Assembly (NCBI GenBank): GCA_002104945.1
Contig: MCFH01000221.1
Location: 1 to 14,525, forward strand
Length of the DNA stretch: 14,525 bases
Direction: 5' to 3'
Source of the DNA: Piromyces finnis finn
Lineage: Eukaryota; Fungi; Neocallimastigomycota
The notes beneath the pieces are model-generated. The model saw nothing but the letters and a program-made list of their open reading frames with translations. It was not told the DNA's origin and ran no database searches. Of the stretch, positions 1 to 1,129 are shown in pieces. Numbering within the stretch: the stretch's first letter is position 1; each line of letters opens with the position of its first letter. A program made the position numbers and the translations under genes.

Positions 1-463
1 TGTTTTATAGTTAGTTAATTAGTAATTTATATAAGTTCACCAATGCATGCTAATAAAAGATTTTTGTAATCCTTGTCGCTAATTTTACCATCAATACGTT
101 CAGCTAATGTCTTATTATATAGTTTTTGATAATCTTTTTAATTCTTTCCATAAGTGCTGGTTCGCGGTAACAGACTATTAATCTTATTAATTTGTCATTT
201 CTTGTTCCTAATCCCTTCATTGAATTTTCAATTCTGTTTCAATAGACAATATTTTTTTTATTAGGATATTTGATAATATTTAGAATGTATAATATTATTT
301 TTTTTTTTTTTGACTTACTGTTCAGCAATATATTGACTTAAGTTTTTTGTAGTTTTCACTATATTATTTGAATTTATAAATATTTTTTATATATTAATAT
401 TATATTTGTTTAATGAAAAAAAATCTAAATTAAAATTATTAAAAAAAAAAAAAAAAGTATTTT

Positions 464-474
464 ATACCTATGGC
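464..474. repeat. Target-site duplication, copy at the poly(A) end (ATACCTATGGC)
   Basis: Identical to 1119-1129 and directly adjacent to the poly(T) run. The match does not extend on either side. Confidence 0.92.
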
Positions 475-1118
475 TTTTTTTTTTTTTTTTTTTTTTTTTT
501 TTTTTTTTTTTTTTTTTTTTTTTTTTTTTTTTTTTTTTTTTTTTTTTTTTTTTTTTTTTTTTTTTTTTTTTTTTTTTTTTTTTTTTTTTTTTAACTTCCG
601 AGTGCATTTCTCATCGATCAGAGTTAGCTCCAATGGTGGTTCTTAGAGAAACGTTGGCTCATTCCTATTGCTAGGTGGTTGTGACCCTCCTGGTCTGTCA
701 TACTGTTTCTTCAGCTTCGACGCTCACTTAATCCATGTACATTAGATGCATGTCGTTGTACGATATTTCACAACTACAATGCTAAGCCTCTTATAGTCAA
801 TTTGATCACGTGTCAACCGCCCCTAATGTTTACACTTAAATTGATTAAGGAATATTATGTGTTTTTGGCATAGCCTAAGTCACCACTATTAAGTTCTAAT
901 TTGGAATGTACCATGTACATAGACCCTCTCAGGCCGGCTAGACGAGTGTTATTATCATAGTAGTAAATTAGAAAGTTCATTTATACTTACCTGAATATCA
1001 TAACCAACCCTGGCAAACCCAGTGGGAAAATCCACAGGCACTGACATCTGCGGGTCGAACCAGAAGCCTTATGTATGCTAAGGAAACGCCTTAACACCAG
1101 GATAAAAACTGGAACGAC
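475..1118 (-). mobile_element. Non-autonomous retroposon, probably a tRNA-derived SINE (~526-nt body plus 118-nt poly(A)), in an annexin intron
   Basis: Pure T run at 475-592 (poly(A) on minus). Identical 11-bp direct repeats ATACCTATGGC at 464-474 and 1119-1129. The body is much richer in G+C than the flanks and has no convincing ORF. The 5' head has an A-box-like TGGTGTTAAGG (1089-1099) and a B-box-like GGTTCGACCC (1052-1061). Confidence 0.85.
1052..1099 (-). promoter_or_regulatory. Putative internal RNA polymerase III promoter (A box and B box) with a tRNA-like fold
   Basis: Minus strand: D-arm-like CCT-ggtgtta-AGG; anticodon-arm-like CCTTA-gcataca-TAAGG (5-bp stem, 7-nt loop, 1067-1083); T-arm-like TCTGG-TTCGACC-C(G)CAGA. 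There is no acceptor stem and the anticodon loop is non-canonical, so it is not a functional tRNA. Confidence 0.6.
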
Positions 1119-1129
1119 ATACCTATGGC
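1119..1129. repeat. Target-site duplication, copy at the element 5' end (ATACCTATGGC)
   Basis: Identical to 464-474. On minus it reads GCCATAG|GTAT, the annexin exon end and 5' splice site. Confidence 0.92.

Follow-up and report, generated by a model that had tools for sequence, protein, structure and literature searches.

A SINE-like poly(A) retroposon inserted across a 5′ splice junction of an annexin-like gene in Piromyces finnis, probably as a polymorphic allele

The window analysed here, which is an entire contig of 14,525 bases (C137), carries a copy of a non-coding poly(A) retroposon within an annexin-like gene of Piromyces finnis. On the evidence set out below, this is very probably a chance insertion of an active element at a T|A site that straddles a 5′ splice junction, present as a polymorphic allele.

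Target-site duplication and anatomy of the insertion: The 11-nt sequence GCCATAGGTAT occurs twice in the window without a mismatch, both times on the minus strand (1129–1119 and 474–464), whereas no such pair was expected from 200 shuffles. The two copies enclose a body of 526 nt (1118–593, minus strand; 535 nt in polished copies) and a poly(A) tail of 118 residues (A118, 592–475), the second longest among the 85 tails measured (84 other copies and the window copy). Read on the minus strand, the arrangement is ..ACTTTACT GCCATAGGTAT | GTCGTTCC.. (element) ..GGAAGTT A118 | GCCATAGGTAT AAAATAC... The upstream copy of the target-site duplication (TSD; 1119–1129) takes in the end of the exon (..GCC ATA G) and the beginning of the intron (GTAT), so that the duplicated sequence consists of the last seven exon bases and GTAT, across the junction ..GCC ATA G|GTAT. 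The insertion point lies between intron positions +4 and +5, and the element is sense-oriented with respect to the gene. The 5′ splice site is retained at 1123|1122; its donor, now composed of the upstream TSD and the first bases of the element, is altered from GTATAA to GTATGT. The downstream copy (464–474) reads TAG|GTATAA, with TAG at 470–468 and the donor at 467–462, and thereby preserves the original donor. It is followed by the original intron (359–467, minus strand), which is AT-rich, ends in the acceptor ..ATATAG|TG and measures 109 nt here and 111 nt in the polished contig C222. The original prediction of a retroposition with a TSD across an AG|GT exon–intron junction was borne out, as were its distances (1122–359, 764 nt; 1122–468, 655 nt; 467–359, 109 nt) and its upstream donor G|GTATGT, which is retained and is nearer to consensus than GTATAA.

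In polished C222 the base preceding the duplication is A (..TACTAGCCATAGGTAT), which the window lacks through a consensus error, and the true TSD may be 12 rather than 11 nt long. The nick at the annexin site is of the T|A type (..TACT|AGCC..), in line with the preference of the family described below.

Assignment of the host exons: The insertion separates the exon EILTNRP..GDIKKTLLAI, which ends with the first base of V (1123–1259, minus strand; open in C222, broken by consensus errors in the window), from the next exon, (V)KTTKNLSQYIAEQ (319–358, minus strand), downstream of the intron. When queried singly rather than as a joined, spliced model, four exon pieces, from both sides of the element, matched the Pfam Annexin family (PF00191) with E values from 9e-16 to 5e-6. 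An intronless paralogue on C113, which shares 100 % identity with “Annexin [Piromyces finnis]” at NCBI, keeps colinearity across the junction (..GDIKKALINLVKS.. against ..GDIKKTLLAI|VKTT..) and with the exons on either side (..GDIKKTLLAI|VKTTKNLSQYIAEQ|IENSMKGLGT..). The Pfam matches and the colinear paralogue together make the junction ..GCC ATA G|GTATAA .. ATATAG|TG well founded.

Empty site and status of the window contig: The window is poorly polished. It is collinear over its full length with C222:90965–104870, with four mismatches and about 114 gap positions, and the sole structural difference between the two is the element together with one copy of the TSD. The flanks of the element match C222:91431–92627 and C222:90965–91441, and these matches overlap by exactly the 11-nt duplication (C222:91431–91441). 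The empty site in C222 points to an insertion that is polymorphic and very recent. Indel differences between the two contigs amount to about 0.85 % and are nearly all of a single base; the window element likewise departs from polished copies only by nine one-base deletions. This pattern is read here as consensus error in thinly covered long reads, and it is on account of such errors in C137 that the annexin exons are frameshifted in the window but open in C222. The insertion would thus be an allele carried by part of the sequenced material: reads with the element would have been assembled apart as a 14.5-kb contig of low coverage, and the main contig C222 would have kept the empty site.

Two other accounts of this contig pair were weighed. 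C137 and C222 might be paralogous loci that arose very recently, by a segmental duplication covering 14 kb or more, and the element might have entered one of them afterwards, so that no insertion polymorphism would exist. Recent duplications are indeed present in the genome, as C224 holds two copies of another target locus at 100 and 95 % identity (see below), but C137 falls wholly within the C222 stretch, without flanking sequence unique to it, and a mere four mismatches in ca. 13.9 kb, beside differences that are nearly all single-base indels as in thin long-read consensus, make a duplicated locus quite improbable. That the insertion arose as a chimera of reads or of the assembly and is present in no nucleus is hardly credible; the low quality of C137 and its indel rate against C222 could be cited in favour, but a full-length element with a perfect 11–12-nt TSD of single-copy sequence, a poly(A) tail and the nick typical of the family is the signature of a true retroposition. 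The allelic reading is retained in what follows.

Some further properties of the contigs were recorded. The small contig C39 (L039/L057) and the large contig C135 (L077, C135:272240) carry the same filled insertion, with the TSD TACTTTAAAAAAA; redundancy of small contigs thus occurs also without any insertion difference. On the minus strand, window positions 5459–8291 are richer in GC, strongly GC-skewed and occupied by a run of Ser/Thr/Asn-rich open frames; this stretch is common to C222, is not a mobile element, and probably represents one low-complexity gene broken by consensus errors. AT-rich, self-similar tandem or low-complexity arrays lie at 13950–14450 and 3678–3752, and cross-match each other and the corresponding stretches of C222.

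A second polymorphic insertion: Another copy, L056 (C31:32441–34341), resides on the 35-kb contig C31, carries a tail of 99 A (A99) and the TSD AACAGAAAGTA, and is located within a subtilase/chitin-binding ORF. The sequences flanking it adjoin, with 11 nt in common, at C224:93502–93512 and again at C224:53787–53797, which represent two paralogous empty sites. Since this copy sits in a coding exon and is also polymorphic, new alleles would be captured whether or not they can be removed by splicing.

The retroposon family: Genome-wide searches at no more than one mismatch returned 178 element heads and 236 tails, and no hits for the reversed-pattern controls; from these two numbers, about a quarter of the copies are 5′-truncated. 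Among 29 further copies, 28 have no mismatch to the window copy and the remaining one has a single mismatch, and all differ from it by eight or nine one-base gaps. The 535-nt body is non-coding, with stops in all three sense frames. Tails in 84 further copies range from 7 to 130 A with a median of about 27. The three longest tails measure 130, 118 and 99 A, and the latter two belong to the two polymorphic copies, which fits extreme youth. Clear TSDs of 9–17 nt (mode 13) were obtained for 75 unique copies. With the maximal TSD taken as reference, T occupies position −1 in 81 % of them and A occupies position 0 in 65 %, where G does not occur at all; enrichment is seen for G at −3 and for C at −2. 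Copies were located in intergenic DNA, in other transposable elements and in a coding exon. On these data the family appears to be active in Piromyces finnis at present. No paper describing it was found in the literature searched.

The A-tail, the TSD, the 5′ truncation and the T|A nick are marks of LINE-driven target-primed reverse transcription, here presumably with an endonuclease of the APE type and in dependence on a LINE. One copy (L062, C57:554882–556782) has inserted into an APE-type LINE, between its Exo_endo_phos and RVT_1 parts, and at least 150 scored reverse transcriptase matches were obtained in the genome, with open frames of up to 1571 aa; frames of 1341, 1466 and 1552 aa are among those of the open APE+RT LINE families. 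At the annexin locus, the machinery of such a resident LINE would have nicked the ordinary T|A site ..TACT|AGCC.. and copied in the retroposon with its 535-nt body by target-primed reverse transcription, and the 12-nt staggered break would have happened to straddle the 5′ splice junction. The duplication of AG|GT would then be incidental, and the old donor, the branch region and the acceptor would all have stayed downstream of the element.

By its short, non-coding, non-autonomous body, its many dispersed copies and the hallmarks of target-primed reverse transcription (TSD, A-tail, 5′ truncation and nick preference), the element resembles a SINE. Its head contains a B-box-like GGTTCGACCCC and TTTTT at +12–16, and has no tRNA, 7SL or 5S match. 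A tRNA-derived head was considered and dropped: ARAGORN reported no tRNA genes, and searches against Rfam were negative both for the window (E≤1) and for a polished copy (E≤10). As a pol III-derived head with an internal promoter was not found, the element is filed as SINE-like and not as a SINE in the strict sense. Compared with LINE-mobilised SINEs and poly(A) retroposons of the Alu or SVA kind, it shares the short non-coding body, the A-tail, TSDs of 9–17 nt, a T|A-type nick, 5′ truncation of about one copy in four, hundreds of near-identical copies and insertion polymorphism; it differs in lacking a tRNA, 7SL or 5S head, in having T5 near its 5′ end, and in a body that, at 535 nt, is long for a SINE.

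Older relatives with 82–86 % identity were identified (L053:84–556, L072:535–1522, L014:1187–1243 and L068:271–352), one of which is a 57-nt tail-only fragment with A7; they could represent an earlier subfamily or the 3′ end of the partner LINE. Several copies lie within Ty3-like gag or integrase sequences (L007, L011, L064 and L090). In L054, L055 and L104 (C13:415010, C14:45139 and C167:414753) each copy is found 6–11 nt 3′ of the same repeat, which ends in ..GGTTCCTTAACA; it extends over at least 590 nt upstream of the L054 and L104 copies, and ca. 146 nt of it are visible in L055 before the contig end. A preferred landing site, a chimeric retrocopy or a composite element could each give rise to this arrangement. 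L070, L071 and L093 have element copies with identical flanks and no detected TSD, and the element there probably belongs to a larger duplicated unit.

Site choice: The original prediction had raised the possibility that the family selects AG|GT junctions and had proposed an enrichment check. When this was run on the 75 other TSDs, AGGT was found once among 740 overlapping 4-mers against 1.26 expected from flank composition, and ACCT once against 1.20 expected; a plain T|A nick preference accompanied these counts. AGGT is thus present in the TSDs at background rate, and the family accordingly does not target splice junctions; the annexin insertion is a chance event. The single AGGT (L085, within AAGGTAT) was examined as a candidate second splice-junction case and rejected, as its flanks have 11–19 % GC and stops in all frames and are non-coding. 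By a rough estimate, in which ca. 30,000 introns were assumed, about 0.5 % of random sites would yield a 13-nt TSD spanning an AG|GT donor junction, which corresponds to about one such insertion among 180–240 copies.

Splicing prospects of the enlarged intron: Two routes had been proposed by which the annexin mRNA could be restored, a single excision of 764 nt and a recursive removal at the duplicated AG, and only the former holds up, on paper. Use of the upstream donor with the old acceptor is a possible way to restore the mRNA, in which respect the case is no different from other intronic insertions; that the filled allele is in fact transcribed, with the GTATGT donor paired to the old acceptor and the seven-fold enlarged intron removed exactly, appears doubtful to us. 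Two competitors are present. The original donor survives at a distance of 109 nt from the acceptor, with which it forms the natural pair in a short-intron organism. Within the element, a 53-nt intron-like module (938–990, minus strand) offers a consensus donor, CAG|GTAAGT, at 990, a CTAAT branch motif at 971 and a TAG acceptor, and is present in all aligned copies. AATAAA does not occur in the enlarged intron, and the original 109-nt intron contains no CTRAY motif.

In known recursive sites the AG is preceded by a branch point and a pyrimidine tract. As a rule, splicing takes the AG that comes first downstream of a branch point. The juxtaposition of AG and GT by the downstream TSD resembles such a site, but here the duplicated TAG (470–468) directly follows the 118 A's; one has to go back about 150 nt, to 621, to reach the nearest CTRAY, and the stretch from there to the tail contains other AGs. 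Neither a branch point nor a pyrimidine tract in the usual position was thus found before AG|GT, and the recursive route is unlikely because A118 precedes the TAG and, under the first-AG rule, nearer AGs follow the CTRAY. Spliced element copies, as would result from pol II and spliceosome processing, were considered and rejected: the 55-nt deletion in L074 lies elsewhere, between short repeats, and the GTAAGT..TAG module is kept in every aligned copy. An exact-match search of metagenome_contigs with a 26-mer of the exon–exon junction and a 25-mer of the element gave no match, a null result that carries no weight for or against transcription.

State of the host gene: Compared with the paralogue, 25 nt are missing from C137 as well as from C222, between TAATT direct repeats within one annexin repeat (repeat 2; junction at 1582–1587 of the window, minus strand, and at about 5905 of L047). 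Pfam profile positions 25–30 are missing, the frame is shifted, and a stop follows ..CVILILHY; neither contig has an uninterrupted frame through the four annexin repeats. A small intron that would restore the frame across the deletion was ruled out, as the sole GT..AG span in the right phase is 29 nt and too short. Because both alleles carry this frameshifting deletion, the gene is probably a young pseudogene, or else encodes a truncated product, and is presumably inactive already. A word search with the paralogue brought up other Piromyces finnis annexins, none of which was tied to the C222 locus among the 120 matches listed.

Comparison with introners: The insertion had originally been interpreted as a splice-masked, introner-like retroposition, by which the element would be removed exactly, in a 764-nt step or recursively, the gene would remain functional, and the type of site would perhaps be favoured by the family. 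Several features are in keeping with this. The upstream donor survives as GTATGT, the old acceptor has not been altered, and A-rich 3′ ends occur in some annexin introns. Introners are documented whose splice sites come from TSDs (PMC9860276), non-LTR retrotransposons gave rise to about 5 % of the introner families that have been classified (PMC12130899), and fixed mammalian transposable elements within 20 bp of exons mostly lie beside donors (PMC3088655). The weight of the evidence is nevertheless against it, and we regard it as very improbable. The 75 other TSDs show no enrichment of junctions; with poly(A) at the end of the element and no G as first TSD base in any of the 75, an AG cannot be supplied systematically. 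The original donor and the internal GTAAGT, CTAAT..TAG module compete with the upstream donor, and the duplicated TAG lies behind A118 with the nearest CTRAY ca. 150 nt away. The idea of a masked or tolerated insertion is further weakened by its absence from the main contig, that is by its not being fixed, and by the 25-nt frameshift deletion common to both annexin alleles; the other polymorphic copy lies in a coding exon, where no masking is possible.

Introners carry GY..AG or recruit it, sometimes from TSDs (PMC9860276), and some of their families come from non-LTR retrotransposons (PMC12130899); the main texts of the introner surveys make no mention of Piromyces. The annexin insertion resembles the introners of Micromonas, Aureococcus and dinoflagellates and the fungal ILEs in that a mobile element lies in a gene with a TSD that includes splice-site bases. 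Those elements, however, create new introns at many genic sites and carry or co-opt GY..AG, whereas the present element has ends of the form G..poly(A), draws no GY or AG systematically from its TSDs (AGGT at background) and has enlarged an existing intron. The suggested intron gain therefore does not apply: the empty allele already has an intron at this junction, and no intron has been made at a formerly intronless position. In mammals, transposable elements very near exons are strongly depleted, and those that persist are for the most part found next to donors (Zhang, Romanish & Mager 2011, PMC3088655), so that tolerance of the annexin insertion is conceivable but is not the default. The present case is like those in the underrepresentation zones of that study in having a sense-oriented element a few bases from an exon, on the donor side, which is either tolerated or disturbs splicing; it is unlike them in that they are mammalian and are fixed or disease insertions, whereas this one would be polymorphic and is found in an AT-rich fungus with short introns. 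A chance insertion of an active poly(A) retroposon, as set out at the beginning, is therefore preferred.

The splice-junction case reveals no new mechanism, and represents the chance insertion of an ordinary retroposon beside a donor. What the analysis adds and is worth keeping is the empty-site allele, the apparent ongoing activity of the family, the status of C137 as an error-rich allele and the frameshift deletion in the host gene. Polymorphic insertions would account for some of the small, error-rich extra contigs of this assembly, which should be annotated as alleles and not as extra loci. Should the filled allele be spliced exactly after all, it would capture the expansion of an intron by an active retroposon as it happens, in an AT-rich, early-diverging fungus whose culture also contains the empty allele, and would provide a natural filled/empty pair for the study of intron-defined splicing with a 655-nt insert and a duplicated donor. 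For the organism itself, the data point to an anaerobic gut fungus with a presently active retroposon family, of which at least two insertions appear polymorphic in the material of one genome assembly; the filled and empty alleles, side by side, would be a clean test bed for how a short-intron fungus splices an intron that has grown seven-fold.
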